Source: Basidiobolus meristosporus CBS 931.73 (taxonomy: Eukaryota > Fungi > Basidiobolomycota). Taken from it: a stretch of 64,000 nt of DNA. The translations under genes and the position numbers were made by a program. The stretch spans positions 1-64,000 of the forward strand of contig MCFE01000290.1 of NCBI GenBank assembly GCA_002104905.1, written 5' to 3'. The notes beneath the pieces are model-generated. The model worked only from the letters and a program-made list of their open reading frames with translations. It was not told where the DNA came from and did no database searches. Shown in pieces: positions 2,128 through 32,571 of the stretch. Within the stretch, counting starts at the first letter, position 1; each line of letters begins with the position of its first letter.

Positions 2128-5100
2128 CTATTGAAGGTATCGTGCAATTTTGGAAATATGAGGGTCAAACATTAGCTCGTGGTGATGAGCGTCAATGGTG
2201 TGAATGGCTACTCGTGAGGAGTACTTCGACCATCCATAACACACTGACTCGTTGTCATTGACTCGCCTGTTTGAGGTGGCTTTAACCAAAACAACTTTGG
2301 CATTCAGCTTCTTCTCTGGTGGGCGGTATTTCCTCATCAAGCGTGTGTTGCACTCAATTTTGTTGCAGATCATGTGAGCTGCAGATTCGTCAATGTTCCA
2401 TTGGCCCAAGCGCGAAATCAAATCGAGATACTCTTGGCTGGAATAAATATCCATATTGACTTTTGTGGAAGCTATTGGAGCTAGAGCGTCAATAACAGTT
2501 ACTCTTGCTACCTCCGAGCCCTCCGCCTCCAGTTGACGTGCGGCCTCGAATGCTACTAGTCCCCCAAAAGAGTACCCGTGCAGGTGATAGGGTCCTTCTG
2601 CCTGAACCTGGCGAATCGCCACCAAATATCTGGCTGCCATCGCCTCGATAGATTCGAACGATACGGTTGTACCTAGAGTTGGGTCACTAATCGAATAAAG
2701 GGTATGGTTCATATGCTCACGGAGCAACTCGAAATAGCTTGATATCCCAATGACACAATGTATGATAAACATAGGTGCACCGGTCGCTTTACAAATGAGC
2801 GATAAACACTCATCTAGAGGGTGTGTGACTGAGCTGCCAGTGGTAGCGTTTAAGAAGCAATTTTCTGCGGATTCGGCAGGACTAATATAGGCTCCGTCGT
2901 ATGGAAGCAAGGTCGAATTTGAGGTATTCCTGGGAATTCCAGGATCCTCCTTTGATATGGATACCACTGCGTCGATCATTGCTGCCTCCCAGGCATTAAC
3001 CCAAGTTTGCACCTGTAGTTCAGAGTGTAATTCTTGGCTGTAGACAATGGTCGCTTCAAGCTCCTCGTCTATGTATCTCGCTGCGCAGTTGAAAATCTGC
3101 TGGCGTCTCCATTCTGGTGCGACACTTTGCAAGTCAAAACTGTATTTGGACTCCGATGTGATTGGCTGCAACAACTGGTGGCTTTCAAGTTTAAACGATT
3201 TTGGCATGTATCCAAAGGAGATTTGCAGTGGATCATGATCATGCTCGTCGTTGGTCTTATTACAGTATCTTTGAAGCCCATAAACTACCTCATTTCCTTG
3301 AATTTGCCGCCTCTGAGCCATGATTTGACGAATTACATCAAGAATGGTATCTTTTGCTGTGACTGAGACAGACACAGGATAGATATTGGTGAACCATCCT
3401 ACTGTTCTGGAGATATCGATGCTACTATCCCAAGCTTGGCGACCATGAAACTCCAAGGCCACTAAAAGCGAATGTCTTTCAAACACAGAGCAAAAAGAAT
3501 ATGCCAGAGAAGCAATAAGCAAATCCAATACTCCTACAGAGGCAGAATAGCCGCAAAAACTGTTGGCCAACTTGGAAAAGTACGCGTTTAACTTAAATGA
3601 GAGGGAGCGTGAGGATCCAACGGTATTTTTGGCAAGTAAAGAAGGATCGGAACACAACGGCTCAACAACTGGTTGCTTTGGCCACAAAGAGCTATCCAAA
3701 CTCCTTCCGTAGTCGGCAAGCATCCTACTCCACTTCATGAATGACATCGACTTGTAGTTGCACTCCTTTCCTTGAAGCAGCTGCTCAAGATCGTCCCATA
3801 TTATGCGCCAGGAGACAAGATCAATGATGTAGTGGTGAACAGTCATGAAGATCAGCTGCTCTCCCTCGGGGGTGTCGTATAAGGCAAACTGGAACAGAGG
3901 CCCGGTCACGATGTTAAGGCTGCGTTGAAGCTGATGAACATGAGAGCGGATCTCATCAACTGACTCTATATGGCGATGGTGCACTTGAATCATATCTTCA
4001 GCCACTGGAAAGATTTTTAATTCCCAATTACCATTAGCAATAGCGAAACGGGCTCGGAGTATATCGTGCTTTTCAATCAACTTGTATATGGATTTAGTTA
4101 AGGCTTCGCTACTAATAGGCTCCCGGACTTGAAGGAGCCAAGCTTGATTGAATTGATTGACATTCGTTTGTTTAATTCCCAAAAACATTCGCTGATTGGG
4201 TGTCAGTGGAACCGGCCCTTCGGTTATATTATCCTCGGAATGCTTCTCCGTTTTGTCAGATTCCAAATATTGAGCAAGCCTGCCAATCGTCTGATACTGC
4301 AGTATGTTTTGTACTGAAAGATGCATATTTGCTTTACGGCAACTAGAGGAAACTTGAATTGCAAGAATAGAATCTCCGCCAAGGCTCTGGAAGCTTTCAT
4401 TGATGCCAATCTTCTCCTCGGGGCAATCAAGAACCTCGGACCAAATCTTCTGAATAGAACTTTCAACTGCCGTACGAGGTGATATAGGAGTAATGTTGCG
4501 ACGGAAACCAAAATTGCCTACTCCCTCAATATTGATTTGCTCAAAGATTGTACTGAGAGATCTCCGATCGACCTTCCCGCTCGAGTTGGTTGGCAATCTG
4601 CTTAAAGGTACCCACTCGACAGGCACCATGTAGTGTGGTAGCTTATTCTGAACATGGGCTCGAATTTCTTCCATGTAAGTTGAAAAGTGGTAGTCCTGTA
4701 TTACTTTCACGTCCATGTCTTCGACTCGCTCATTCAAAGAAACAAACGCTACTAATACCTTGCGGTTAGTTGTTTTGTCAACCACTAACAGCAAAGTACA
4801 CGCGCGAGCGACCTTAGGATGTTCATGTAGGGCGTGGTCAATCTCATCCAGCTCAATTCGTAAGCCGTGCAGTTTGATCTGGTTGTCTTTCCTGCCATTC
4901 AATTCGATCGAACCATCCGAGTTGAAGCGTGCTAAGTCCCCTGTACGATACATGTATTTGCCATTCCCAAATGGATTCTTGACAAATACAGACTCCGTAA
5001 GAGTGGGCCTATTTAGATACCCACGAGCAAGTTGTGGGCCTGAGATGCATAGTTCACCTACAACTCCTGTTGGTACTTGTCGCAAGTCAGAGTCAACAAT

Positions 5101-8100
5101 GTGCACAATGTTAAAGCCTATTGGCTTTCCGACATTACTACAAGATGTATTTGTACTAAGCGATTGTTGAATTGTTACCGCAACTGCAGCTTCAGTCGGT
5201 CCGTAACCATTACTCAATTGAACATGCGGCGCCCAGGTATCACGGATTGTTGTAGTCATCATCTCACCACCAAGTTGCAGTTTTTTGAGGCTGGGGACTG
5301 ATTTCGGCCGAATTTTACCGGCGATCGTTGTAGTAAGGTTCGCGCAGGTAACATCCATAGATCGCATCACGCTGTCAAGTGAAGAAAGAAGCGCGGGTCT
5401 TGATTCCATACATACACGGGCTCCTGAGAGTAGCGAACAATATATATCAAGAACTGAGGCGTCAAAGGTGTAGCTCGCAAATTGTAACACTGCATCTTCT
5501 TCAGTCAGATTCCATATTTCTTGCTGTGCACGGACAAAGCTGAGCACAGCAGAATGCTCCATCAAAACGCCTTTCGGGGCTCCGGTAGATCCCGATGTAT
5601 ATATGATATAGCATAAGGCTTCCGGTGTTAGATTGCTGACAACGGGATTATCGGATGAGTACTTTTCTATAGCCTCCTGGTCTTTGCTGAGCAATACTAG
5701 AGTCTGACCTTCGAACTTCTCTTTATGATCCTCGGCAGTAACAATTATTGTAGCTTTAGTGTCCTTCACTATAAATCTGACGCGTTCAATAGGATGATCA
5801 GGATCAATTGGCACATAGGCCCCGCCCGCCTTTAGGATAGCCAACATTGCCACTATCATATCTATAGACTTATCAAAACATATGGGTACCATGGATTCAG
5901 CAGTGATCCCAAGACTGAGGAGATAGTTTGCTAGGCGATTGGCTCGTTTGTTGAGTTCTGAATACGTGATGAACATGGTAACTCCAAATTGTACCGCTAT
6001 ATTGCTGGGAGTACGCAATACTTGGCGCTCGAACTCGTTGTGAATACAAGATTTTGATAGCGCGTCGCCCAATGAAGCATTAGTCGAAGCATAGACGCAG
6101 TCATGCAATACGCAACTTATATCTCCAAGTAGAGCATCTGATTTGGCATGAATCAAACTATCGAAAAGCTTTGAGTAATCCCTAGCAATAATTTTAGCAT
6201 TGGCTGTATCAGCGATCTTCCCACTAATATCCAGACGATACGTTAGTCTTGAGCTATCTGGACCAATTAGTAGAGTTAGTGGGTACTACAAGTAAGAATA
6301 AATGATCAGTATATAAGCTGCATAGAAGATGAACTATTACGAAGTTACAAACCTCAGTAGTCTCCGCATCTTGACAAGGAACTAATTTTAGTCGATTTGC
6401 ACTAATTTCCCCCAGTTCAGAATTAGTAGAGAGCATACTAGAAGGTAGATAGTTGATGGCAGTATCGATAAGTGGTGAGGTTTCCGTCCAATGCTCAATA
6501 TTACGAAGACTGCTTTGCTGGTACGAAATAGTTGAAGCATAATCTTGCTGTATTTCTTGGAGCCAGCCATGTATTGGCGCTTGTTCGTCGTATCGAATGC
6601 GACATGGTAGCATATTTATGCAAGGCCCCACTATTCTGTCGATGCCTTTGATCTCACTATTTCTCCCATCTACCACATACCCGAAAGTTACATCCTTAGC
6701 TTGAGTGTACATTTTCAGTAGCATTGCCCAAGATGCCTGAATTAGTGTAAATAGAGTTACACCCGACCTTCTGGCAAATTGCAGTATCTCAGATAAAGGT
6801 GTCTCAATAGAGCTATATATCTGTGACTTTTCGCAGTCTGTACGATGGACACTCAACTTTGGAAATGGTAGATTTTCGACACCACTCAACTTGTTTTGCC
6901 AGAATTGCGTTTCTTTTGTGGAACTTTCGTGAGTTCGGAGTAGCATGCGGGAGATGAAGCTCTTAAATGGGTATGTCACCGGTCGTAGAGTTGAGTGATA
7001 TACAGCCTCAAAGTCAGCAAGAATCAGCTTCCACGACGTTGCATCCAGGATAGCATGATGCCAGCTAATAACTAGTTCACTGATACCGGTGTTTGTTTCC
7101 AACAGTGCAAATCGCATTGCCGGCTCCCCAAGAGGAAAGCTCGCAATCTTATCTTCTGCAAGATACGCCATCCGCTCACTCTGGACGCTATCTTCGTCAC
7201 ATACGATATGGACCCATTGATGATCAGAGTTCTTGACAACCACTTGGAGGAATATAGGGCCGTTCTTTTGGATGATAGGGTTCTGCACAAAAACGGTACG
7301 TAAAATAGGATGTGTATCAACAACAGTTTTCCACGCCTTTTTAAGTTGGGTAATGTTGGATGAGCCAATAAGCTGATATGTCTGCTGCACATGATAATAC
7401 TCGGGGTTCTTTAGCATTCCTGCTATAAGGCCTTCTTGTAGATGTGTACATGGCAAGATATCATCAACCGCCGTGGTATCGATACCGCTCTCCGGAAGTT
7501 TTTGATGATAAAGAAGATGAAAATCTGCCTCCGAAAGAGGAAGTAACGGAAAATCACTTCGAGTGTGCTCACTCCGACTAACATGCACACAAAGCTCGAT
7601 TATAGTATGCAGAGCCTCTTCCCACTCCTTAAGCCATAAAGAAACAGTCTCTTGTGAGTGTAACGCCGTGCTAAAAGTGATCGTTGCCTCTAAAAGGCCG
7701 CGATTCACACCAACCGAAATATCAAATACATGATTCCTCTTCCAATCATCAGAGATTTGGCAAGTATCAAAATCGTATTCATCATCCGGTTGTTGGAAGA
7801 AGGCATCTGCCTTTTCGAGTTGCTGAAATCGACCAACATAATTGAATCCAATTTGAATTTTGTCATTTCTCAGCCTGTTGTCGGGGCCGCTCAAGTGACT
7901 TAGCAAACCGTAGGAAAAACCGTTGTTTGGTATCATCTTTCTTATGTCCTTGACATTTTTTAAGGTAGCGAGCGCATTTTCCGTTTGTGCTGGTTTTATA
8001 GTTATAGGGTATATCGACGTGAACCAACCAATCGTTCGAGATGTATCAATATCTTCGCACCAAGCTTCTCTACCATGGCTCTCCATTCCAATTGTCAAAG

Positions 8101-11100
8101 ATTCTGAATTGAATACATTGCAATATGCAATAGCTAGTGAAGAAATCATCAAATCGAGGGCTTCAGTTTGAAATGCATGATTGCATACTCCAAATAGGTT
8201 TTCAGTTTGCTCGTTACTTATGTTGAATGAAATCATTTTCGTGGTTGACATTAGATTCTTTTCAAGTGCGTAATCATCAGCTACTGGTTGCACCACAGGA
8301 TATTTCGTCCATAAACTTATATCCAATGTCTTAGCATAATCATTTAGCATCCTGCTCCACTTCATGAATGACATCGACTTGTAGTTGCACTCCTTTCCTT
8401 GAAGCAGCTGCTCAAGATCGTCCCATATTATGCGCCAGGAGACAAGATCAATGATGTAGTGGTGAACAGTCATGAAGATCAGCTGCTCTCCCTCGGGGGT
8501 GTCGTATAAGGCAAACTGGAACAGAGGCCCGGTCACGATGTTAAGGCTGCGTTGAAGCTGATGAACATGAGAGCGGATCTCGTCAACTGACTCTATACGG
8601 CGATGGTGCACCTTGAACTGTACCTCAGCTGGTGGGAGCACACTCAACACTGGGTTCTCTTCAATATTAGAGAAGCGGGCACGCAGCATATCATGATTAT
8701 CAACGATTACTCTTAAGGCGTTCAAAAGTGCGTTGTGAGTAGTTGGTTTTTGCAGCCGAAGTAGCCAAGATTGGTTAAAATGATGCACATTTGTTTGTTT
8801 TTGCTCTAGGAAGTATGCTAGAATAGGTGTCAAAGGCACGAAACCATTGAGGTCTTCTGCTATCATATCAGTTTTTTCGGTAATCTGTGTGGATGCCAGC
8901 GCTAATTCTCGGATAGTGGAATTTTGCATGATTTGCTGAACACTTAAGAAAATGCCTTTTTGTCGACATAGCGAAGAGACACGAATTGCTGATATCGAGT
9001 CACCCCCTAGGTGATAGAACAAATCATTCACACCAATGCTTGTGACATCGATGTTAAGTGTTTCTGCCCATATCGCTTGCAGCGCTTTCTCAAGTGTAGT
9101 CGAGCACTCTGACTTCGTCTGATTCGAAGATGAAAAGATCAACATACTTTCTCTGCTCAAGTCAGCAACGGTAGCGGATAGGGCTTTGCGATCAATCTTT
9201 CCACTATTATTTCTTGGCATTGTGTTAAGTGGCACCCAGAGGCTAGGGATCATATACGGAGGAAGCCTCATTATAACAAGCTCTCTAACTTCCTTGATAA
9301 AATTGGCAAGCATCCCGGAGTCGGCGTTAGTAAGCATTCTGACATCGCCAGCGTCTTTATCAAATCCATCGAACGTCAGGAATGCCACTAACGTGTTATG
9401 ATCCATATTAGAACCACTATCCATCAGAACAACACAAGCTCGTTTGACTTCTGAGTGCTCATGTATAGCATGTTCTATCTCATCCAACTCTATTCTTAAG
9501 CCACGTAACTTTATCTGGTTGTCTCTTCTTCCCATCAACTCAATAGAACCATCGAAATTAAAACGGGCCAGATCACCAGTACGATATAAACGTTCTCCAT
9601 CTAGATATGGATTCGGTACGAACGCCGCTGCGGTTTGCTCCGGTCGATTTAGATAGCTACGAGCAAGTTGAGCTCCTGAAATACATAGTTCACCAACAGC
9701 TCCAAGCGGGGTCAAGCGCAATTTGGAATCCATGATATAGATCCTATTGTTTGATAGAGGTTTGCCGATATTGCTACATGAGGTTTTAGCGCTCAATGAC
9801 TTGTTTACAAGCACCGCAACCGCAGCTTCGGTTGGCCCATATGCATTGCTTAATTGAACATGGGGGGCCCAAGTATCGCGTATTGTAGCGGTCATCATTT
9901 CCCCACCGACACATAACTTTCGTAAATTTCGAAGATTATTCGGGTTCAGGAGGCTCAACACTGTTGGGGTAAACATTGCGGAGGTGATATTCATCCCAGA
10001 AATTGCTTCATCGATATTCTCATGGAATATTTTCTTGCTTGCAATACAGGCTCGGGCTCCAAATAGTAAGGGAACATATACCTCAATTACAAACAGATCG
10101 AACGTGTAATTAGCCATTTGTAGTACTGAATCATTAACAGACAGTTTCCATATATCCTGCATCCCATTAATGAAGTTTGCTACAGAGCCATGCTCTAAAA
10201 GTACGCCTTTGGGAAGTCCGGTGGATCCCGATGTATAAATGGCATAGCACAGATTTGCTGCAGTTATGCCTATCACGGCTGGATTCGGAGATGAATACTC
10301 CTCAACTGGCTGATCTTCGATGATCACAACTGTCGTCACAACTCCGTCAAACTTGTGCCTATATTGGCTGTTGGCGACCACGATATTTGATCGAGTTTCC
10401 TCGATGATGAACCGATTACGATCATCCGGGTTACCAGGATCCAATGGAACATACGCACCTCCCGATTTCAGAATGGCCAACAAGGTGACGATCATGTTCA
10501 CCGATCGATCAAGACACACAGGCACGAGGGTTTCTATGTTGACACCGATATCTATCAGATGGTGTGCAAGTCGGTTGGCGCGACAGTTCAGCTCATGGTA
10601 CGTCACGAATTCCTCATTCTCGAACTGGACTGCGATGTTGTCTGGCGTACGTAGGACTTGTTCCTCAAATAGTGTATGGATGCAGCACTCGGGCGAGTTT
10701 CTGGTGAACGAGCCGCTCCACTGTCGCAGCAGCTCATACTCCTTACTAGAGATGATGCCGAAGTCATCAACCCGAGTCTCAGCGTTGTCTGGTATGGACA
10801 GTAGTGCTGTCTTCATATGCTCGAAAATCCACTTGGCCTCGTCATTGTGGATGAGATTCTCGTCGTACAGGATTGACAGCTCGTGCCCATCTGCCCCGGT
10901 GGCGAGTTCCACCACAACGGCATAGTTGCTTGGCATTGTTGCCTTGACAACCTCCATCCCAATCGAGTGCAGGCCATGTCCCAACTGGTCAATGTCGAGA
11001 TTCTGCACTGCCAACAAAGAGTCGAATAACGAGCTACCAAGTTCACCGACACACAGCTTCTGAATATCCTGCAACCCAATATTCTGGAATCGATGTTGCT

Positions 11101-14100
11101 CCACCTGTCTCCTGTGCATACCAGTCATCACCTCGAGCATAGTTGAATTATCGCTGAGGTTGACACGGACTGGCAGTGTGGTGATACAAGGCCCACATAT
11201 TTGATCGATACCCGCCACAGGTACACTACGTCCGGAATTGACAACCCCAAATACAACATCCGAGTTTCCAGTATGGCACTTCAGCACCAAGGCCCATGCT
11301 AGATTCACGATCGTAGCCAAGGTCAAGCTGTGGGCGCCCGTCAATATGGAGAAGTCAGCACAGATTCTCTCTCGGATCAAGGTACGTGCTTGTGGTTTGT
11401 ACGAGTGTACAGTAGGCTTGGCAATGTGTGTGGCGGTGACTTGATCCAGAAGCTGTGCCCAATATTCGATAGCTTCCTGTCTATCCTGATCGATGACGTA
11501 TTCGATGAACCGAGAATAGGCTGGTCTTTTCGCCAGCTGCGCGCCTCGGTAAGCAGTAACAAGATCCTCGATGAGTAGTCCCATTGACCAACCATCGTAC
11601 AGCGTGTGATGGATGGTCCAAATGAAGAATGTTCTGCATTGATCATCCCTCAGAACAGTGAAGCGAGCTAGCAGTTTCCCCATCTCAATCCCGCGTTCTT
11701 GATCTTGTTTGAGTACTTTCGATAGCTCCGTGGTAATGTCAGTGTTGCTTGGGCACTTAATCACTGTCCAGTCCATGTGCCCACCAACTAGGACTACCTG
11801 CAGCCCACCCAGGTGCGGATGACCAGAGTTTGTGAAGACGATTGTTGTGCGAAGGATTGGATTTGCCTCGATCACCGACGCCCATGCTGACTTCAGAAGG
11901 GCAAGATCAACCTCGGGTTTGCAAACGAACACCTGCTGGGTCAGATAATCGGAGCTCGATCGCATCCCCAGCGCAAACAGGCCTTCCTGAAGGGGTGAGC
12001 AAGGGTAGATATCTTCTACATGTTCGGGAGTAATCCCATTCTGGGCAACATCCACATCCAGCAACCGCTCCAAATCGTCTGGGTTGAGCTGAAGCAGCGA
12101 GCACTTGTCAGCCTCTGCTATCTCCGCCGCTTGCACTTGAAGTGGCTGAGCCAGCGAAGCTAACCTGGCAATGGTAGGATGTTCGAAGACTTGCTGCACG
12201 GTGATGCAGCAGCCTGACTGGCGAGCCAACGATACCAGTTTGATGGCCGAGATCGAGTCTCCACCAAGGCTGAAGAAGGAATCGTTGACTCCAATCTCAT
12301 TCTCAGGGACGTTCAGCACCGGTGACCATATTTTCAGCCATAGGGACTCCCTGTCGGTGGGCGGAACATTATCTCGGCCTCTCTGCGATCGACTGAATGC
12401 ATAGAGTTGCTCTTTACTCGCTCCGCGCACATGCGCCTCTAGCTGCTTGCGATCTATCTTCCCGCTCACATTGGTTGGCATCTGACTCATTGGTAAGAAG
12501 ATATGAGGCATCATATAGGGTGGCAATTTCGATGTGATCAGATCTCGTATTTCGCTAATCCATTGAGCCCCCGATGCCAGATCTTCGAGACGGAGTATGT
12601 GAGTCTCTGGCCCAGACTCAGACTTCGTGTGGAAGTATAGGAATGCCACTAGTACTTTACGGCTATCCAGCTCATCAATGATCAGCGGAAGTACGCAAGC
12701 ACGGGCTACCTCAGGATGTATATGAAGCGTGTGTTCTATTTCATCCAACTCGATACGGAGACCGTTTAACTTGATCTGGTTGTCTTTTCGTCCCAACAGC
12801 TCCACTGTACCGTCCATATTGAATCGAGCCAGATCGCCAGTGCGGTACATGCGCTCCCCTTTCCTGAACGGGTTTGGCACAAAAGCCTTCTCCGTAAGAT
12901 CTGGTCGATTGAAGTAGCCCCGAGCAAGTTGACAACCAGCAACGCAGAGCTCACCAACTGCGCCCATCGGGGTCATTCTTAGTTTAGGATCCAGAATATA
13001 AATTTCGTTTCCGCCAATTGGTCGACCAATATTGCTACAGGACGTTTTGTGATTGACTTCCGAATTGATCATAAAAACGACGGCGGCTTCAGTAGGACCA
13101 TACATGTTACTAAAGCTTACTTTACGGCTCCAGCGATCTTTAATTTCGGTAGTCATCATCTCGCCACCAACACTTAGTTTCCTCAAGTAGGCGTCGCATT
13201 TGGAGTTGAGTAGACTGGCTACACTGGGTGTTAGCCAAGCAGCAGTAATATTTGTATCGGATATGATTTGATTCAAATTGGAATATAGAGCCTCTTTACG
13301 TGCAAGTACGGTTCGAGCGCCACATGCCAATGGATTGTAAACCTCCATCACAAACATATCAAAGGTGTAGCTAGAGAATTGAAGCGCACGGTCTTCATGA
13401 ACTAACCGCCATCTAAATTGAGAAGAGACAATGAAGTTAACTACAGAGCCATGCTCTAAAAGTACGCCTTTGGGAAGTCCGGTGGATCCCGATGTATAAA
13501 TGGCATAGCACAGATTTGCTGCAGTTATGCCTATCACGGCTGGATTCGGAGATGAATACTCCTCAACTGGCTGATCTTCGATGATCACAACTGTCGTCAC
13601 AACTCCGTCAAACTTGTGCCTATATTGGCTGTTGGCGACCACGATATTTGATCGAGTTTCCTCGATGATGAACCGATTACGATCATCCGGGTTACCAGGA
13701 TCCAATGGAACATACGCACCTCCCGATTTCAGAATGGCCAACAAGGTGACGATCATGTTCACCGATCGATCAAGACACACAGGCACGAGGGTTTCTATGT
13801 TGACACCGATATCTATCAGATGGTGTGCAAGTCGGTTGGCGCGACAGTTCAGCTCATGGTACGTCACGAATTCCTCATTCTCGAACTGGACTGCGATGTT
13901 GTCTGGCGTACGTAGGACTTGTTCCTCAAATAGTGTATGGATGCAGCACTCGGGCGAGTTTCTGGTGAACGAGCCGCTCCACTGTCGCAGCAGCTCATAC
14001 TCCTTACTAGAGATGATGCCGAAGTCATCAACCCGAGTCTCAGCGTTGTCTGGTATGGACAGTAGTGCTGTCTTCATATGCTCGAATATCCACTTGGCCT

Positions 14101-17100
14101 CGTCATTGTGGATGAGATTCTCGTCGTACAGGATTGACAGCTCGTGCCCATCTGCCCCGGTGGCGAGTTCCACCACAACGGCATAGTTGCTTGGCATTGT
14201 TGCCTTGACAACCTCCATCCCAATCGAGTGCAGGCCAGGTCCCAACTGGTCAATGTCGAGATTCTGCACTGCCAACAAAGAGTCGAATAACGAGCTACCA
14301 AGTTCACCGACACACAGCTTCTGAATATCCTGCAACCCGATATTCTGGAATCGATGTTGTTCCACCTGTCTCCTGTGCATACCAGTCATCACCTCGAGCA
14401 TAGTTGGATTATCGCTGAGGTTGACACGAACTGGCAGTGTGGTGATACAAGGCCCACATATTTGATCGATACCCGCCACAGGAACACTACGTCCGGAGTT
14501 CGCAACCCCAAATACAACATCCGAGTTTCCAGTATGGCACTTCAGCACCAAGGCCCATGCTAGATTCACGATCGTAGCCAAGGTCAAGCTGTGGGCGCCC
14601 GTCAATATGGAGAAGTCAGCACAGATTCTCTCTCGGATCAAGGTACGTGCTTGTGGTTTGTACGAGTGTACAGTAGGCTTGGCAATGTGTGTGGCGGTGA
14701 CTTGATCCAGAAGCTGTGCCCAATATTCGATAGCTTCCTGTCTATCCTGATCGATGACGTATTCGATGAACCGAGAATAGGCTGGTCTTTTCGCCAGCTG
14801 CGCGCCTCGGTAAGCAGTAACAAGATCCTCGATGAGTAGTCCCATTGACCAACCATCGTACAGCGTGTGATGGATGGTCCAAATGAAGAATGTTCTGCAT
14901 TGATCATCCCTCAGAACAGTGAAGCGAGCTAGCAGTTTCCCCATCTCAATCCCGCGTTCTTGATCTTGTTTGAGTACTTTCGATAGCTCCGTGGTAATGT
15001 CAGTGTTGCTTGGGCACTTAATCACTGTCCAGTCCATGTGCCCACCAACTAGGACTACCTGCAGCCCACCCAGGTGCGGATGACCAGAGTTTGTGAAGAC
15101 GATTGTTGTGCGAAGGATTGGATTTGCCTCGATCACCGACGCCCATGCTGACTTCAGAAGGGCAAGATCAACCTCGGGTTTGCAAACGAACACCTGCTGG
15201 GTCAGATAATCGGAGCTCGATCGCATCCCCAGCGCAAACAGGCCTTCCTGAAGGGGTGAGCAAGGGTAGATATCTTCTACATGTTCGGGAGTAATCCCAT
15301 TCTGGGCAACATCCACCTCCAGCAACTGCTCCAAATCGTCTGGGTTGAGCTGAAGCAGCGAGTACTTGTCAGCCTCTGCTATCTCCGCCGCTTGCACTTG
15401 AAGTGGCTGAGCCAGCGAAGCTAACCTGGCAATGGTAGGATGTTCGAAGACTTGCTGCACGGTGATGCAGCAGCCTGACTGGCGAGCCAACGATACCAGT
15501 TTGATGGCCGAGATCGAGTCTCCACCAAGGCTGAAGAAGGAATCGTTGACTCCAATCTCATTCTCAGGGACGTTCAGCACCGGTGACCATATTTTCAGCC
15601 ATAGGGACTCCCTGTCGGTGGGCGGAACATTATCTCGGCCTCTCTGCGATCGACTGAATGCATAGAGTTGCTCTTTACTCGCTCCGCGCACATGCGCCTC
15701 TAGCTGCTTGCGATCTATCTTCCCGCTCACATTGGTTGGCATCTGACTCATTGGTAAGAAGATATGAGGCATCATATAGGGTGGCAATTTCGATGTGATC
15801 AGATCTCGTATTTCGCTAATCCATTGAGCCCCCAATGCCAGATCTTCGAGACGGAGTATGTGAGTCTCTGGCCCAGATTCAGACTTCGTGTGGAAGTATA
15901 GGAATGCCACTAGTACTTTACGGCTGTCCAGCTCATCAATGATCAACGGAAGTACACAAGCACGGGCTACCTCAGGATGTATATGAAGCGTGTGTTCTAT
16001 TTCATCCAACTCGATACGGAGACCGTTTAACTTGATCTGGTTGTCTTTTCGTCCCAACAGCTCCACTGTACCGTCCATATTGAATCGAGCCAGATCGCCA
16101 GTGCGGTACATGCGCTCCCCTTTCCTGAACGGGTTTGGCACAAAAGCCTTCTCCGTAAGATCCGGTCGATTGAAGTAGCCCCGAGCAAGTTGACAACCAG
16201 CAACGCAGAGCTCACCAACTGCGCCCATCGGGGTCATTCTTAGTTTAGGATCCAGAATATAAATTTCGTTTCCTGCAGTTGGACGGCCAACATTACTACA
16301 GGATATTTTGGTATCCACCTCTGGATTTACCATAAAAGCAATGGCGGTCTCAGTCGGTCCATATGCGTTTGTCACGCGAACTCTTGAAGCCCATCGATCG
16401 CTAATATCGGTTGTCATCATTTCACCGCCTATGATTAGTTTGTTGAGATGTGGCAAGCTCTTGGGTTGTAGTAAACTGGCTAGCGTAGGTGTAAGTGAAC
16501 CAAGCGTAACATTCATTGACTGTAGCACATGAGTGAGATCGGTGAGAAGCAATTCTTTCCTGGCCATACAAAGACACCCACCAGTAGATAGTGTTGAGAA
16601 TATGTCTAGTATAGATGCATCAAATGTATAGCTTAGGAATTGTAGTACTCTGTCATCTGATGTTAGCCGCAGTATGTGCACCAATTCGTGAAGATAATTT
16701 GCGACAGAGGAATGCTCTAGCATCACACCTTTCGGAGCTCCAGTAGATCCTGAGGTGTAGATTATATAACATAAGTTCTTTGCACCATGATTGCTGAGCA
16801 GGGGATTATCGGTAGAGTATCCACAAAGCAGCTGTCTTTGGCAATCCATATTTATGATCGATATCCGTCTAAACCTGCCTTTTAGCATATCTGTGGTGAT
16901 TACAACCTGAGCGTTGGTTTGCTTCACAATAAATTCGTTTCGTTCTAACGGATTCTCTGGATCAATCGGGACGTAGGCTGCACCGGACTTGAGTACACCA
17001 AGTATCGCTACTATCATATCTACTGACTTTCCCAGGCATAAAGGTACTACAGTTTCTATGTCGACACCGATATCTATCAGATGGTGTGCAAGTCGGTTGG

Positions 17101-20100
17101 CGCGACAGTTCAGCTCATGGTACGTCACGAATTCCTCATTCTCGAACTGGACTGCGATGTTGTCTGGCGTACGTAGGACTTGTTCCTCAAATAGTGTATG
17201 GATGCAGCACTCGGGCGAGTTTCTGGTGAACGAGCCGCTCCACTGTCGCAGCAGCTCATACTCCTTACTAGAGATGATGCCGAAGTCATCAACCCGAGTC
17301 TCAGCGTTGTCTGGTATGGACAGTAGTGCTGTCTTCATATGCTCGAAAATCCACTTGGCCTCGTCATTGTGGATGAGATTCTCGTCGTACAGGATTGACA
17401 GCTCGTGCCCATCTGCCCCGGTGGCGAGTTCCACCACAACGGCATAGTTGCTTGGCATTGTTGCCTTGACAACCTCCATCCCAATCGAGTGCAGGCCATG
17501 TCCCAACTGGTCAATGTCGAGATTCTGCACTGCCAACAAAGAGTCGAATAACGAGCTACCAAGTTCACCGACACACAGCTTCTGAATATCCTGCAACCCA
17601 ATATTCTGGAATCGATGTTGCTCCACCTGTCTCCTGTGCATACCAGTCATCACCTCGAGCATAGTTGGATTATCGCTGAGGTTGACACGAACTGGCAGTG
17701 TGGTGATACAAGGCCCACATATTTGATCGATACCCGCCACAGGAACACTACGTCCAGAATTGACAACCCCAAATACAACATCCGAGTTTCCAGTATGGCA
17801 CTTCAGCACCAAGGCCCATGCTAGATTCACGATCGTAGCCAAGGTCAAGCTGTGGGCGCCCGTCAATATGGAGAAGTCAGCACAGATTCTCTCTCGGATC
17901 AAGGTACGTGCTTGTGGTTTGTACGAGTGTACAGTAGGCTTGGCAATGTGTGTGGCGGTGACTTGATCCAGAAGCTGTGCCCAATATTCGATAGCTTCCT
18001 GTCTATCCTGATCGATGACGTATTCGATGAACCGAGAATAGGCTGGTCTTTTCGCCAGCTGCGCGCCTCGGTAAGCAGTAACAAGATCCTCGATGAGTAG
18101 TCCCATTGACCAACCATCGTACAGCGTGTGATGGATGGTCCAAATGAAGAATGTTCTGCATTGATCATCCCTCAGAACAGTGAAGCGAGCTAGCAGTTTC
18201 CCCATCTCAATCCCGCGTTCTTGATCTTGTTTGAGTACTTTCGATAGCTCCGTGGTAATGTCAGTGTTGCTTGGGCACTTAATCACTGTCCAGTCCATGT
18301 GCCCACCAACTAGGACTACCTGCAGCCCACCCAGGTGCGGATGACCAGAGTTTGTGAAGACGATTGTTGTGCGAAGGATTGGATTTGCCTCGATCACCGA
18401 CGCCCATGCTGACTTCAGAAGGGCAAGATCAACCTCGGGTTTGCAAACGAACACCTGCTGGGTCAGATAATCGGAGCTCGATCGCATCCCCAGCGCAAAC
18501 AGGCCTTCCTGAAGGGGTGAGCAAGGGTAGATATCTTCTACATGTTCGGGAGTAATCCCATTCTGGGCAACATCCACCTCCAGCAACCGCTCCAAATCGT
18601 CTGGGTTGAGCTGAAGCAGCGAGTACTTGTCAGCCTCTGCTATCTCCGCCGCTTGCACTTGAAGTGGCTGAGCCAGCGAAGCTAACCTGGCAATGGTAGG
18701 ATGTTCGAAGACTTGCTGCACGGTGATGCAGCAGCCTGACTGGCGAGCCAACGATACCAGTTTGATGGCCAAGATCGAGTCTCCACCAAGGCTGAAGAAG
18801 GAATCATTGACTCCAATTTCGTTCTCCGTTATGTTTAGAACTTCCAACCATAAGTCTTGGAAATACTTTTCGTTCTTTGTTATAGGCTTAGAATAATTAC
18901 GTCCTTTGATTTGAGTAAATGACTGAATGGTGCTCCAATTAGTGGCTGCGAAAATATTTGCTAATTTCTTTCTATCCAGTTTACCAGCAGAACTCCTTGG
19001 CATCCTACTTATTGGTAACCATACAGCTGGGACCATGTAAGATGGAACTTTTGATCGAACTAGATCCCGCGCCTCCGCAATCCAGTTGACGAATCGTTCA
19101 TTGTTTGTTGTGATTAATTTACACTCTGTCTCGGTTTCTTCGAACTCGGAACTGAACGCAAGGAATGCGGCCAGAATTTTCCGTTTTGGCGTCGTATCAA
19201 TAGTCATAGCCAAGACGCAGGCTCCGAGAACCTTTGGGTGCTCATGAAGTGCATTCTCGAGTTCATCCAGCTCGATACGCAGGCCGTTTAGTTTGATTTG
19301 ATTATCTATTCTTCCTATCAACTCAACCGAGCCATCCAAATTGTAACGCGCCAAATCACCAGTGCGGTACATCCGCTCCCGGTTATCGTAAGGATTGAGA
19401 CTGAATGCCTTTTCAGTAATTTCAGGTCTATTAAGGTATCCACGCGCCAATTGATTTCCAGCCACACATAATTCACCAGCTACACCCAGTGGAACAGTTT
19501 GTAATTGTGAATCAAGAATATAAATCTTATTACCTCTAATCGGTCTTCCCACATTGTTGCAGGCCGTACCCACTTGGACTTTTGGATTCATCATAAATGC
19601 CACTGCGGCTTCTGTTGGACCGTACAAATTAGTCAATTGTACTCTAGACGCCCAAGTATCACGGACGCTTGTGGTTAACATTTCTCCACCCACTAAGAGC
19701 TTCTTCATACTTGGCACCATCCAAGGCCGCACAGTTGCAGCGACAGTTGGAACAAGTAGAGAGGCTGATACCTTCATAAGCTCAATTGTACTTTCCAATG
19801 CGTTCAACAGCTTTTCCCTACTTGCTACTGCTACACGTGCCCCCACCATAAATGGTGTGAAGATTTCTACTACTGATGCATCGAAAGTATAACTGGCAAA
19901 CTGAAGGACGCTGTCTTGATCATTCAACTGCCAATTTTCTTGATTTGCAAACAGGAAGTTTGTAACGGCTGAATGCTCCAATATCACTCCCTTTGGTACA
20001 CCTGTAGAACCCGAAGTGTACAATATATAACAGGGATCACTTGGCTCCAAATCGATTGCCACCGGATTTTCACTGGAATATTGGCAGATAGTCTCCTCTA

Positions 20101-23100
20101 CTTGGTCAATCGTGACTGCTGTATATCCATTGAATAAAGTATGATGAGCGCTTGTTGTCACAACAATATTGGCTTCCGCTTCTTGAAGGATAATGCGAAT
20201 TCTGCTTGTTGGGCTCTCCAGGTCCAATGGCAAATAGGCACCCCCGGCCTTGAGCACAGCCAGCATTGCAACTATCATCTCGACGGACTTATGGAAGTAT
20301 ATAGGTACAACTGATCTGGACCCTATACCCAGATCTCTCAAGTAATGCGCTAGATTGTTGGCTTGCTTGTTTAGAGACTCGTAAGTGACGCAGTGGCCTT
20401 CTTCAGTTTGAACTGCGACATTTTTTGGTGTGGCTTGTACTTGTCTTTCAAACAGTTTGTGAATGCATTCGTATTGCCCCACAGTACTACTACCGCCAAA
20501 GGAGATTATCATTTGTCGCTCGTATTCGGAAATTCTTGGGATCGCCAAGACCTTTGTATCTTCACGAACGTTAAGGAATGCTTGCAGTATGGCTTCCAAT
20601 CTGTTGATAAATAGACTTGCCAATGCGGGTGGTAATGTGCCACGACTATAATCTAGGCGGTATTTGAACACTCCCTCATGGATCCAGATATTGAGTCCCA
20701 GAGTGTATTCTGTTGGCTCAATAGTGTTTTCTAACTCGAAATATAGGTCACAATCCGCTCTAGAGGCCGTTTCTGACTGCTCTACTGGCTGGAAGTTCAA
20801 AATTGAGTCGAACTCAGGTGCACAGCCACTTGCTTTGCACCATCCCTTTATCGTTTGTAATCCAATCTGTTGGTAGGGGATCGAATCAATCATATGCTGA
20901 TGAATTCTTCTCAACCACATGAATACGGGCTCCTCTTCCTCATACGAGATTCTTAGTGGTAAAGTGTTAAAGCATGGGCCAACAACTTCATCAATGCCCT
21001 TCATGGATATGTTTCTACCATTGACGAGAACCCCGTAAATGCAGTCGCCTGCGCCATAATAAGGTCGAAGCACCATCCCCCAAGCTGCTTGAAACAGGGT
21101 AAATGTGGTTACTCCTGCTTTCTTGGCAAAGGTTTTCAGGCTCTCAATTTGTAAGCTGCATGTCGCCGTTAACTGGAATCGCTCGTCCTTTGGAAAATCC
21201 GGACCACCTAACTTTGGGAGCAAGCATGGCTCAGCATTGGACAAGTAGCGACACCAAAACTCTCTTCCTGCCATGTCTGTGTACTCTTTCTGCTCTTCTA
21301 TGTAATATTTGATGAATTCCTTGAATGGCAGTGCTGCAGGCTTAGGAATTCTGTTGTAAATAGCATGAACGTACTTCATGATTATTCTGTCTGACCAGCC
21401 ATCGTTCGTTGCATGATGACGACTTATGATCATCCGCGAGCAGCCGTCGATTTCACGGATAACGCATAGCCGTATGTTTGGCTTCCCAAGGGGAAACCCT
21501 TTGGTTATGTCTGTAGCGAGGTACTCCATTAAAGCTTCATCAGCCATTCCATTTCGTGCGGATATATAATCGGTAGTAATCTTTATCTGTCTCAGGACTA
21601 CTTGGACATACAACCCCGACGAGTGTTTAGTGAATGGACTGCTGAGGAAAATGGTTCTTAATATGGGCAGGTCTTGGATCGCAGTCATCCAAGCAGAGTT
21701 CAGCTCTTCGAAACTCCAATGACCTCTGAGCTGGTATACATCTTGTACATGGTATAACTCGGGTGATCTCATATTGCCGATGATCAATCCTTCTTGTATA
21801 GGGGAACATGGATATATGTCTTCAACGTTTTGAGCCAAGTTTTCATCATATTGAGGTAATATTTCGAACTGAAGCTTGTCTGCCTCCTCTTTTGTTAGAC
21901 CCAATAGTGGAAAGTCTGAATTTGTGAACCGGGATGTGGTTTGATTGGCGCACTTTACTATGACCTCAATAAGGGTATCTCTCCAAGTCTGTAGCCACTG
22001 CTCCATTTCAGGTTTTTCATGTAAGGCGTTGCTATACGAGATGGAAGCGCTCAGCTTCTGATGCTTCATAGTCACCTCAACCTCAATGGCGTTCATTCTT
22101 TTCCATGTTGGACCGATCATACCCAAATCAAACTTATACTGATCACTCACGTCTTGTAGCAACGCGTTCGCTTTTTCGAGGTGTTGAAACCGTCCCAAGT
22201 AATTGAACCCGACTTGAAAGAAGTCGTTACGGAAGTTTGAAGCGGTTTTCTCGTTTAGATAACGAAGTAGTCCGTAGTTAAAACCATGATAAGGAATATT
22301 TCTACGGATGTCTTTGGTACGCATCAGCACATCGATCGCAGATTCCTCTGGGTAGACCTGGATACTAACTGGATATATGGTAGTAAACCAACCAACGGTT
22401 CTGGAGATATCAATGGAATCCTTCCATGGCTCCCGGCCATGTCCTTCGGCTGCAATGGTCAACGATCGGGCATCAAAGGTTGTACAGTAAGCTGTCGCAA
22501 GTGAAGAAAGCATAAAGTCTACAGCCTCTGTTCTGTACGCATCGTTACTCACTCCAAATAGAAGGCTGGTGTGCTCCTCTTCTAACGAAAAGGATAGTGT
22601 GTGTACTGATTCCATAGTGTTCAAATCTAGCTTCGATATGTCGACTTTCAGAGGCTCCATAAGCTCTTGTTTAGGCCAATCGGTAAGGTCCAACGAGGCC
22701 GCACGGTTTCTCAGTAGCTTGCTCCAAGTCAAAAAGGAGATTGATTTGTAAGATAATGTACCTCCGTTCAACAAGTTCTCAAGATCTTCCCAGATAATAC
22801 GCCACGAGACAAGATCTATTAGATAGTGATGAATGGTCATGAAGAGCAGTTGCTCACCCTCCGGAAGATCGAAGAGTGCAAATGAAGAAACGGGCCCTGA
22901 TTCCAGATTGAGACTACTCTGAATTCCATGAATTCTCCTCTTCAAATCCTCTATGACCTGAACTTCGGAACGTTCAACCTCTATGTTTTTTTCGCTTTTT
23001 TCTATCAGCTGTTGTTTCCAGCAACCGTCTACACGAGAAAACCGTACACGTAGCATACTGTGGTGCTCTACGAGTCTGTTGAGCGCGTCTACTAGCTGCC

Positions 23101-25886
23101 ACTTCTGCAGAGGATACCTCACTTTCACTAACCAAGACAAGTGAAAATGATTGATGTTGGACTGCTCAACTCCTAGAAACTGTTGCTGAATCGGTGTTAA
23201 AGGAATCAAGCTCTTAGTCCCCATTTGGTCATCCCAATCGGTGGGTTCATATTCTATTGATGTGTCGGTAACCAACTGTGCGTAGTCAACAGCTTGTTGA
23301 ATGGTTGGATATTGTAAAATACTCTGTACGGACACCTTAACTCCCATTTGACGACACATCGATGACACCTGAATGGCGGAAATGGAATCACCGCCCAGAT
23401 GATAAAAGGAGTCGCTAGTACCAATGCAAGATTGTTCTATGTTGAGCACTTCTGCCCAGGCTTTTTGCAAGATTTTCTCTATGGGAGAATTCGGCTGCGT
23501 CTTCAGTTCATTATACTCATTGGTACGACTATGCATGTTCTTCGAATAACTCTTAAAGAGCTTTTCTAGCAGCCTGAAGTCCGTCTTTCCGCTTGTGTTG
23601 ATAGGGATTCGAGTAAGAGGGATCCAGAGAGTAGGCACCATGTATGGGGGTAGCTTTCTTCTCGTTAGCTCTTGTATTTCCTCCACCATTGCACTGATAT
23701 CGCCATGTCTGTCTCCGCTACTTAAAATTTCCGTCTCATCCTCGACAGCTACGCTTTTGAATGTAACAAAAGCCACAAGCGCTCTATTCCTCTCTGTCTG
23801 GTTGGAGGGCTGTTCTATATTCAGGAGCCTAGCTGAAGCTCTTGCTACATTCGAATGTTGATGTAAGACGTGCTCTATCTCATCTAACTCAATTCGTAGC
23901 CCATTTAGTTTTACCTGGTTATCCTTTCGCCCAAGAATAACTATTGATCCATCGAGGTTATATCTCCCCAAGTCTCCTGATTTGTAGAGGCGCTCTCCCA
24001 AACAGAACGGGGAATCGATAAACGCCGATTCAGTCAGCTCTGGTCTATTCAAGTAGCCACGAGCAAGTTGAGGGCCTCCGAAATAAAGCTCCCCAACAGC
24101 ACCCAACGGAACCAGTCCAAGTGTGTCATTCAGGATGTATACTTTGTTTCGGCCGATTGGCCAGCCAATGTTATTGCAGGCTGTGGCGGTGCTTAATGAT
24201 TTTCTAACCATGGTGTATACTGTGGTCTCGGTAGGCCCATACCCATTATGCAGATCCACACTTTTGCACCAGGTATCGCGGATCGGTTTGGTCATCATCT
24301 CACCTCCTTGCTGGAGTTTTCTAAGAGTGGGCACTTCACTAGGCTTTAATAAGCCAGCCACTGTGGTTGTTAGCTGGGCTGCGGTAACCTTCATCATATG
24401 TGCCATTTCAGACAGATTAGTGAGCAAGTTGTTTTTGGAAGCCAGGCAAATTCGCGAGCCAATTGTGAGATTTACAAATAGGTCGAGTATAGAGGCGTCG
24501 AAGGTGAAATTGGAGAATTGGAGAAAGCGATCACTTTCGTCCAGACTGAGTATGTTTTTATGGCTTGCTGTGTAATTGACGACGGCCCGATGCTCTACCA
24601 TGACACCTTTAGGTGTTCCTGTGGACCCAGATGTAAATATCACATAGCAAAGACTAGAAGAGTCAAGCTGAGGAACCACAGGGTTTTTTTCTAACTTCCG
24701 GTGGCTTTCAATGTCGCCACTGTCTAACAAAGTCAGCAGGATATTGGTACAGGCGGTAAAAACACTTTTCAAGTCGCTCGTAGTCAAAACAATAGTAGAC
24801 TTCGTTTCTTCAAGGATAAAAGATACCCGCTCTTTGGGATATTCCGGATCCAAAGGAACGTAAGCAGCTCCTGACTTTAACACGGCTAAGATAGCCACCA
24901 CCATATCAATAGATTTGTCGATGCAGATAGGCACAATTTTCTCAGGCCCCACTCCAAGATCAATGAGGTAGTAGGCAAGTCTATTAGAACGACGATTCAA
25001 CTCAGCGTACGTAACAAATTCTTTATCCTCAAATTGTAGCGCGATGTTGAAAGGAGTCTTATCCGCCTGCTCTTCCACAAGTTGATGAATACAACGATCA
25101 TCCAATTCCGGGATATAATCAGGCTTTGCGTGCTGCCATGTATTTAGAAGTAGGATCTTTTCCTTGTCGGAAGTCCAATCCAGAGATCTTAGAGGTGTGT
25201 TGAGATTGCTCACTATTTTTTGCATTATGTAGACGAATTGGTCGGCATAAAGCCGGCCTTGATCTTGCTGAAAATGAGTATTGGATAGGCTTAGCCGTAT
25301 ATTGAGCTCCCCATTGACCAACCAACTGACTGCGTACGCGGCAAACTTGATGACCGAGTTTAAAAATCAGCCACTTGTGTTCGAGAAGATACAATATTTA
25401 ACTTCTAAAGTATAGTACCTGCTGGTTGATATCCATTTCGACTATTTCATCGTCACTGGCAAAAAGGACTGATGTGTTGAACGTATGCTCTACATTGCCA
25501 GATTCAAGGTCGACTGACTCCACGGGAGATGTATTGGCTAACTGTCTTACCCATTCCACTACCGAGAGAGATTTGGTTGTTTCATCGATGCTAGAGTGAA
25601 ATACCTGTATGTTGTTCGCAAGCGAAGAGGAGGACTGATTACGGATGCTTGTGCCAAAGGAGATTTGGGGGTCTCCAGTGTACAAGTTGAGCAAAATAGC
25701 CCAGGCTGCATGAACAAGACTTATCTCAACATTCAGGATATCCTCTGGCATGCCGTTTTTGTAGACTCTATCCACCGATATAACATTGGACTTGGTAACA
25801 TGGAACCAGCGCTTCTCGGCAGTGTCTAAGACTTCAGAGCTGGATGATGGCAAGAGAAGACAAGCGTTCGCTGATGGGATGTTCAT
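2128..25886 (-). CDS. Hexamodular nonribosomal peptide synthetase, about 7,872 aa: C*(truncated)-A1-T1-E1-C2-A2-T2-C3-A3-T3-C4-A4-T4-C5-A5-T5-E5-C6-A6-T6-E6-TE; exons 25419..25886, 6353..25345, 2128..6285
   Basis: Six A domains (YxxYTSGSTGxPKG, YGPTE, YRTGDL, NQxKLxGLRIEL) and six T domains (LGGDSI). Five C domains (HHxxxDGWS/HHAILDATS), three E domains (HHYxIDLVSWRI plus ExHGRE/Q and SRTxGWFT) and a TE (GYSFGG, IDA, HHELM). The three ORF-track ORFs join in frame through two phase-0 introns; exon lengths 468+18993+4158 are all divisible by 3. Confidence 0.93.
3719..3984 (-). repeat. 266-bp block of E6 nearly identical to 8346..8611 of E5
   Basis: Both encode VHHR(R/H)IESVDEIRSHVHQLQRSLNIVTGPLFQFALYDTPEGEQLIFMTVHHYIIDLVSWRIIWDDLEQLLQGKECNYKSMSFMKWSRML with almost identical DNA; the flanks are diverged. 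Confidence 0.92.
6286..6352 (-). other. Intron 2 of the NRPS (67 nt, phase 0)
   Basis: GAG|GTTTGT donor and CTTGTAG|TAC acceptor. Splicing gives ETTE|YPLTLLIGPDSSRLTYRLD, collinear with EPTE-YTLGLNIWIHEGVFKYRLD of C2. Confidence 0.85.
8346..8611 (-). repeat. 266-bp block of E5 nearly identical to 3719..3984 of E6
   Basis: Direct sequence match; see partner block. Confidence 0.92.
10180..13012 (-). repeat. Intragenic NRPS repeat copy C (A4 C-terminus, T4, C5, A5 N-terminus)
   Basis: Near-identical to 13441..16273 at offset 3261 bp; antisense ORFs recur with the same offset (10320/13581). Confidence 0.95.
13441..16273 (-). repeat. Intragenic NRPS repeat copy B (A3 C-terminus, T3, C4, A4 N-terminus)
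   Basis: Near-identical to copy C (-3261) and, in part, to copy A (+3261); only scattered substitutions (e.g. GVANS/GVVNS, GPGL/GHGL, DKYS/DKCS). Confidence 0.95.
17052..18805 (-). repeat. Intragenic NRPS repeat copy A (T2 core, C3, start of A3)
   Basis: Near-identical to 13791..15544 (offset 3261); identity starts at the DSFFSLGGDS codons of T2. Confidence 0.93.
25346..25418 (-). other. Intron 1 of the NRPS (73 nt, phase 0, AAG acceptor)
   Basis: CAG|GTACTA donor, CTGAT branch-like site, CATCAAG|TTT acceptor (the only AG after the in-frame TGA). Joins INQQ|FAAYAVSWLVNGELNIRL. Confidence 0.75.
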
Positions 25887-28400: not shown

Positions 28401-29318
28401 GTATCTGCTGACTTTTTACTGGTTTTTTGCTGGCAAATTTTTAGTTGTAATTCCTTGTGGAAGAAGTTGGTAGCTTATTGCCAAAAATGGTATAAGTGCT
28501 ATTCAGCCTAGTCTCCTCCTAGAAATATGTCTGCTTGTCTGCCTAATAGCTAATACCTAAGATATTGATAGTTATAAGTTTGGAGAAACTTACAATTTAG
28601 TTGATATCATGATGGTATTCTGCTGGCCTTTGGATTTTTTTCTTAAGGATTACCACTTACATAATTCCCAATTTATGACTAATAATCATTGCAACTGTCT
28701 TGACTTGGGAAACAATGAGTGCATATACAACTTGGCAGTCAATAGGACTAATATAGCAGCTTTAAATTGTTTTTGATATTGAAATCAGCTCTTGATATAA
28801 AATTGTCTTGACAACAGTAACACCTGGGCACCACTTAGAGTGACTAGAAGAATATAGATCCCATTTGTTTGTTTCTTGCAATGAAGTTAGGTATTTGAGC
28901 TTCTGAGCAGGTTTTCCAAGAAAAAACATTCAAGGAGCAATGACAACAAAATGAGTTATGACAGCTTGGAGATATTGGGAGTGATTGAGTTAACAAGTAG
29001 ATTGTGTGGCTTTGCCAGAAGATTTTCTAAATATGAAGTAGTTCTGATACTTTAGCATGTCTGAAGTAAAGCACACTGATGGAATATACATAAAAAGGCT
29101 TCAAGAGCACTTGTGCAAAGCTTGGGGGCCTTTGGATAGCTTTTTAATCTTACATGTCCTAGGTACCAGTTATTTAGGTGTTATATGCCAGGTACATCCC
29201 AACAAACAACTTGGGCAGAATGTCCAAAGACTTGTAAACTACAATCTAAGTGACCAAGCTGATGGAATATTTAAGTGTAATTACAAATGTTACAACAGAA
29301 TGCTGGATATGGTATATT
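28401..29318. mobile_element. CpG-free, AT-rich decayed sequence, probably a repeat or transposon relic
   Basis: No CG dinucleotide seen by eye over about 920 bp and no intact ORF. No family-diagnostic motif recognised. Confidence 0.35.
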
Positions 29319-32300: not shown

Positions 32301-32571
32301 GGCAAAAAGGTTAAATAATTTTCAGTGTCCACTTTTAGTATCATCATGGCTTAATACTGTATCTCCTTATGCGTTTGAGTTGTGCGTCTGGACCCATGCT
32401 CATCTTGATTGGCTCGGGTGCCACCCACCCATCCACTAATAAAATTAGATTCAAGAATTAAGCTGCGCAAAGGGTAACCCATTGTTTTACTTATTCCATT
32501 TCACTTGTTTAAACTTTCCTTCCTTCCACCTTGCACTTCCTTCCTAACACTAGCCTCCCTGACAAATAATA

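Follow-up and report, generated by a model that had tools for sequence, protein, structure and literature searches.

A specificity core with an ortholog in Basidiobolus ranarum lies between homogenized flanks in an NRPS gene of Basidiobolus meristosporus

Concerted evolution of NRPS and PKS domains has been described in bacteria by Medema et al. 2014 (PMC4256081), who proposed that diverged functional segments escape it through stabilizing selection or reduced recombination. In a study of bacterial NRPS by Baunach et al. 2021 (PMC8097286), the core of the adenylation (A) domain was the predominant unit of recombination, while the C-A linker, the A C-terminal subdomain, and its interface with the T domain were retained. 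Natural A-core swaps were also found by Crüsemann et al. 2013, as cited in that paper (PMC8097286). A related unit used in engineering, the flavodoxin-like subdomain of Kries et al. 2015, extends from midway between motifs A3 and A4 to the G-motif, according to the border definition given in PMC10212144. A published survey of Basidiobolus NRPS genes makes no mention of recombination or gene conversion (PMC7466969).

Here we describe an NRPS gene of Basidiobolus meristosporus in which the fourth A domain, A4, carries a short specificity core of its own between flanks that are nearly identical to those of neighboring modules. The case resembles the model of Medema et al. 2014 (PMC4256081), in which the domains of one synthetase are homogenized and group by gene while diverged segments escape. 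Unlike the cases treated there (PMC4256081), it is eukaryotic (Zoopagomycota), lies in a spliced gene, and is resolved to the base; moreover, the escaping segment is only 143 codons inside an A domain, and B. ranarum has an independent border nearby. As in natural A-core swaps (PMC8097286), the differing segment falls within the A core, and the scaffold retains the C-A linker, the A C-terminal subdomain, and the A-T interface. In natural swaps, however, it is the core that arrives from elsewhere, and it resembles another module or pathway more than its ortholog, whereas the A4 core of B. meristosporus is nearest to its positional ortholog and the piece that moved appears to be the scaffold. 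The probable process, gene conversion, is a known one; the example is a new, base-resolved one from a fungus.

The window analyzed is the whole stretch of 64,000 nucleotides from contig MCFE01000290.1 of strain CBS 931.73, which has a GC content of 45% and few long ORFs. It contains the following gene, delimited by its ORFs, introns, Pfam domains, and core motifs:

2128..25886, minus strand: NRPS gene K493DRAFT_377413

As read directly from the sequence, the coding sequence is join(25886..25419, 25345..6353, 6285..2131) plus the stop codon, with two GT..AG introns (25418..25346 and 6352..6286). The three exons sum to 156 + 6,331 + 1,385 = 7,872 codons, exactly as many as there are residues in the database protein P0001 ([quoted passage not shown]; 7,872 aa). 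We searched the exons separately, P0001 being the database's own spliced model; it matches the A4 core at 100% identity. This gene model, 377413, is among the NRPS candidates for transfer from bacteria listed by Tabima et al. 2020 (PMC7466969).

Pfam matches and motif positions gave the architecture partial C, A1-T-E-C-A2-T-C-A3-T-C-A4-T-C-A5-T-E-C-A6-T-E/C-TE, that is, six modules as assembled. The adenylation domains match PF00501 (E = 2e-148 to 9e-230) and PF13193 (AMP-binding_C), and in A4 the core motifs A3, A5, A7, A8, and A10 are found at residues 3944, 4072, 4159, 4177, and 4286; the best solved relatives are LgrA and GrsA. From A2 to A5, motif A3 recurs every 1,087 residues, which equals 3,261 bp and agrees with the period given in a preliminary description of this DNA.

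Directly downstream of the NRPS gene, an ORF on the minus strand (136-1521) encodes a GT4-family glycosyltransferase (PF00534, PF13692). On the upstream side, about 10 kb (25,900-36,000) contain no ORF of at least 200 aa, the GC content falls to 0.36-0.40 at 26-30 kb, and TATAAAAG is found about 50 bp upstream of the NRPS ATG at 25886.

The blocks that make up A4 and its neighborhood are as follows:

13013..13440, minus strand: A4 specificity core, the unique block (428 bp, 143 codons; ORF residues 3961-4103, P0001 residues 4125-4267)
10180..13012, minus strand: homogenized tract S2, comprising the A4 C-terminal part (from GNEIYILD), T4, C5, and the A5 N-terminal part to just past motif A3
13441..16273, minus strand: homogenized tract S1, the twin of S2, comprising the A3 C-terminal part, T3, C4, and the A4 N-terminal part
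17063..18805, minus strand: third copy of the inner tract b, comprising T2, C3, and the first ~43 residues of A3; equal to 13802-15544 and 10541-12283
16274..16701, minus strand: A3 specificity core, in register with the A4 core, to which it is 57% (nt) and 46% (aa) identical
9752..10179, minus strand: A5 specificity core, likewise in register with the A4 core
16702..17062, minus strand: A3 N-terminal part, not homogenized with A4 or A5 (43-56% nt identity)

A4 is thus a chimera of an A5-type N-terminal part, its own core, and an A3-type C-terminal part. The preliminary description had already read it as a mosaic equal to A5 as far as KGVLLEHGSV and to A3 from GNEIYILDPK onward, and the motif positions and exact runs bear this out: the former peptide is found at ORF residues 3951 (window 13442-13471) and 5038, and the latter at 3017 and 4104 (window 12983-13012). 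An exact-run analysis at an offset of 3261 found 19 mismatches in 2,833 bp between 10180-13012 and 13441-16273, with a longest exact run of 814 bp, and the identity collapsed exactly across 13013-13440, so that the extent proposed earlier for the unique block was correct to the base. The third copy of the inner 1,743 bp, at 17063-18805, emerged from exact runs at offsets of both 3261 and 6522. With a background identity of about 55%, chance is ruled out as the source of the contrast between flanks and core.

Both borders of the core are sharp rather than gradual. On the N side, identity to A5 drops from 1.00 over the last 13 flank codons to 0.49 over the first 13 of the core. On the C side, a weak shoulder precedes the sharp rise: over its last 26 codons, the core is 0.69-0.72 identical to A3, compared with 0.50-0.57 for other pairs, before identity reaches 1.00.

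The A4 core begins 10 residues after the PKG of motif A3 and ends one residue beyond the G-motif, whose equivalent here is ..IGRPI.. between motifs A5 and A6. It contains motifs A4 and A5 and, by motif alignment, the nine pocket positions 235-331, in keeping with the earlier statement that the block, taken to run from just after motif A3 to just before A6, holds all variable pocket residues; K517 lies outside it, within the shared C flank. In holding the nine variable pocket residues, the block is like the engineered flavodoxin-like subdomain as outlined in the accounts of Kries et al. 2015 and Thong et al. 2021 (PMC8616955). The match to this subdomain that had been proposed is roughly right. 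It is close at the C-terminal border, which falls at the G-motif in both, and looser at the N-terminal one, where the A4 block starts just past motif A3, earlier than the "middle of A3 and A4" of the engineered borders as defined in PMC10212144. Its start falls in the helix given by Thong et al. as HKGISNLKVFFENSLNV in GrsA (PMC8616955), so the natural block, unlike the engineered subdomain with the borders of PMC10212144, includes the preceding helix.

Nei-Gojobori estimates of dS within the gene set the flanks apart from everything else:

A4 vs A5, N flank (163 codons): dS 0.00
A4 vs A3, C flank (240 codons): dS 0.03
A4 core vs every other core (143 codons): dS saturated; 49-57% nt and 43-52% aa identity
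Every other A-domain pair, all segments: dS saturated

Since dS is 0-0.03 in the flanks and saturated elsewhere, the six modules must have diverged anciently, and the near-identical tracts are a recent overlay on them. The homogenization of the flanks claimed in the preliminary description is therefore real, and a dS comparison of the kind that it had proposed, made by segment, separates flanks at 0-0.03 from a core that is saturated against all other A domains.

The closest non-self match of the A4 core, in a search with the core only, was the B. ranarum protein P0002 (K7432_009943), at 72% aa identity. Its contig, L001 (10,995 bp), starts within A4 and is colinear with the B. meristosporus gene. 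The cores of P0002 are 72, 73, and 76% identical in amino acids to the A4, A5, and A6 cores of B. meristosporus, respectively, but only 41-56% identical to nonorthologous cores, and the A4 core and A5 core are spaced 3,261 bp apart in the same order as in B. meristosporus. The pocket codes, read by hand from the alignment, also agree: the A4 codes, DMMSSGMVVK (B. meristosporus) and DMMSNGMVVK (B. ranarum), match at 9/10 positions, and the A5 code, DLITCGAVAK, is shared by both species at 10/10 positions. The A3 code of B. meristosporus, likewise read by hand, is DALTIGAIAK. Divergence between the species is uniform, with dN near 0.20 whether in cores or in flanks and dS no lower than 1.7 (saturated); the dN/dS of the core is about 0.1. 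An orthologous core at the same position indicates that the A4 core has been resident since before the species split, under purifying selection (dN/dS ~0.1). Apart from this ortholog, the A4 core is at most 57% (nt) or 54% (aa) identical to anything else.

The flanks behave differently. They are 99.3-100% identical within B. meristosporus, compared with 60-78% nt identity between the species, the latter range holding in every 50-codon window of the alignment. Flanks that are orthologous yet far more alike within a species than between species are a signature of concerted evolution.

A similar pattern was found within B. ranarum itself, where the N-terminal parts of A4 and A5 are the same: L001 1-104 equals 3262-3365 at 100%. 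The next 58 nt in L001 carry seven differences, all synonymous, up to ..PKGVLLEH, after which the two sequences diverge fully. This N-side border lies ~20 codons (~60 nt) from that of B. meristosporus. As expected of a short-read assembly, L001 breaks within this repeat, so the tract seen there is partial; the comparison of borders across species covers the N side, and that of the modules covers numbers 4 to 6. The upstream half of the B. ranarum gene with the A3 ortholog was not found, the best matches being 49-52% with the A3 N part plus core as a query. One candidate for this half, P0271, was rejected as a paralog, its cores being 69, 52, and 57% identical to those of A1 and A2.

We consider it likely, with a rough probability of 80%, that ongoing gene conversion homogenizes the scaffold of modules 3, 4, and 5 and that the A4 core is an ancestral resident that escapes it. 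Modules 3, 4, and 5 would undergo concerted evolution through nonreciprocal recombination within one gene, with conversion tracts copying the scaffold, i.e., the A C-terminal part from the G-motif, T, C, and the A N-terminal part to motif A3, and halting at the edges of the specificity cores. Conversions that overwrite a core would alter the peptide and hence be purged by selection, and the ~45% divergence between cores may also block the extension of heteroduplexes; the persistence of the A4 core may be due to both. Judging from the comparisons above, the core appears to be the old resident and the flanks the new part, and the resemblance to a swap appears to have arisen in the reverse direction.

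The placement of the borders may also be telling. As a rough estimate, if a 2,833-bp tract could fall anywhere in the 3,261-bp period with equal chance, the remainder would cover the 291-bp pocket span (235-331) with p ~(428-291)/3261 = 4%, and the probability that another species has an independent border of its own no more than ~60 nt away is also about 4%. Taken together, the two figures suggest that selection, a mechanical stop where the sequences diverge, or both are at work.

The homogenized tracts bear marks of repeated events. The three-copy zone has 15 variable sites at which private variants are interleaved (8 in copy U2, 5 in U1, and 2 in U3), and the 1,743 bp present in three copies are nested inside the 2,833 bp present in two. 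Interleaving and nesting together point to several short events rather than one. With identity higher within the species than between species and variants interleaved among three copies, both signs of concerted evolution are present.

The GC content at third codon positions (GC3) differs among the parts of the gene:

Tract b (three copies): GC3 0.585
Tract a (two copies): GC3 0.519
Tract c (two copies): GC3 0.483
Cores and nonhomogenized flanks: GC3 0.36-0.42
Other T/C/E regions of the gene: GC3 0.42-0.46
Orthologous tract b of B. ranarum: GC3 0.41

GC3 thus climbs with the copy number in the B. meristosporus tracts, and plain GC is 0.48-0.52 at 10001-18805, compared with 0.42-0.45 elsewhere in the gene; the raised GC3 is absent from the B. 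ranarum tract. This pattern is compatible with GC-biased gene conversion acting over a long time, which may be what raised GC3, although other causes could raise it as well.

Elsewhere in the gene, the Condensation-family domains after T6 and T5, which are probably epimerization domains, share a stretch of 300 bp at 92% identity (3665-3964 vs 8292-8591, minus strand). The corresponding pair in B. ranarum (L001 5001-5285 and 9626-9910) is only 78% identical. The B. meristosporus pair is probably another conversion patch in K493DRAFT_377413.

A donor of the A4 core was looked for in two large searches, a word-index search limited to the 143-aa core within the 6,355-aa product of exon 2 and an exhaustive HMMER search of 1.84 billion representatives. 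Neither found a donor or anything closer than the B. ranarum ortholog, with the proviso that each 50% cluster is represented by a single protein in the library, so that a near-identical core could sit in a clustered protein. The best paralog in the same genome, in which a search for a donor of the 428-bp cassette had been proposed, was P0121 (ORX94727.1) at 54%, below the 72% of the B. ranarum ortholog. The A4 core is thus 72% identical to its positional ortholog and less so to every other match, which is not what an imported core would show. Of the earlier suggestion that specificity was either kept or introduced by cassette exchange, the first part is supported by the ortholog, while the second is not supported.

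P0121 itself, encoded on another contig of CBS 931.73, has two consecutive modules with identical core identity profiles against the six B. meristosporus cores. By these profiles and by eye, its two cores appear near-identical in the printed sequence, and its T-C-A(N) blocks occur three times. In P0121, either the core may not have been spared or a whole module may have been duplicated.

Homogenization could instead proceed by cycles of unequal crossing-over, with whole modules being gained and lost, a process that tandem in-register repeats favor. The paralog P0121, with its two modules of seemingly identical cores, looks as whole-module duplication would leave it. However, unequal crossing-over would duplicate or delete the full period, including the core, yet every core in K493DRAFT_377413 is both old and unlike the others, B. 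ranarum keeps the same module period and order, and the interleaving of variants takes the form of short patches. We therefore regard it as an improbable substitute for conversion, albeit the one that fares best among the alternatives.

Slightly more improbable is an assembly artifact, in which near-identical tracts of 2.8 kb were misjoined or overexpanded, making the mosaic A4 or the number of modules unreal. Long tandem repeats of this kind are prone to assembly error, but PacBio reads underlie the B. meristosporus assembly (PMC7466969), and the three cores fit into ~7 kb. We checked the reads as Logan contigs of two runs, X1 and X2, which are probably from the same sample as the assembly. 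These read-derived contigs cross both borders of the core (a 488-nt contig spans 12983-13470) and give the branching implied by the assembly, which demands three or more occurrences of tract b on a single molecule. In addition, 21 variable sites have copy-private alleles, several of which are present in the read-derived contigs, and the independent assembly of B. ranarum shows core-S-core at a period of 3,261. The depth of the X1/X2 contigs might seem to speak for an artifact, with 108-118 for the core and 120-176 for the repeated tracts at 10541-13801, just 1.1-1.6x that of the core where 2-3x is expected. However, Logan depth is not a copy number, and these values break flow conservation under any arrangement, so we used them neither for nor against; the module copy number accordingly rests on the assembly, with no independent confirmation from the reads. 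Older runs with the same species label (X4-X6) contained none of the sampled words, which is no proof of absence.

A reading along the lines of the preliminary description, a recent tandem duplication of the 3,261-bp module that extended the assembly line, followed by import of the 428-bp cassette through double recombination as a true subdomain swap, is very unlikely: identical flanks, a unique core, and an exact module period are the trace it would leave, and A-core swaps are widespread in bacteria (PMC8097286), but the A4 and A5 cores are already present in B. ranarum in the same order and spacing, the core has diverged between species as much as the flanks, neither large search found a donor, and the A4 core, saturated against all others, is as distant from them as any old module pair.

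Gene conversion of the scaffold around a resident core thus remains our preferred reading. Beyond it, we tentatively raise the possibility, which we hold to be rather doubtful, that a conversion-proof island extends from just past motif A3 to the G-motif, that its borders are held by selection in two species separated by saturated dS, and that the graded GC3 is a footprint of GC-biased conversion in a zygomycete.

A swap-like mosaic can form by replacement of the scaffold around an old specificity core, as seen here with a dated ortholog. Such mosaics are poor evidence for cassette import or recent duplication unless an ortholog or a donor is known. In A4, nature also supplies evidence that foreign N- and C-terminal parts can be tolerated by an A domain when they are joined shortly past motif A3 and at the G-motif, near the cut sites of engineered flavodoxin-like subdomain exchanges. 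If the segment proves to be a conversion-proof island, conversion would keep refitting foreign scaffolds to resident pockets, and both borders would be naturally validated fusion points for A-domain engineering, from a eukaryotic host.
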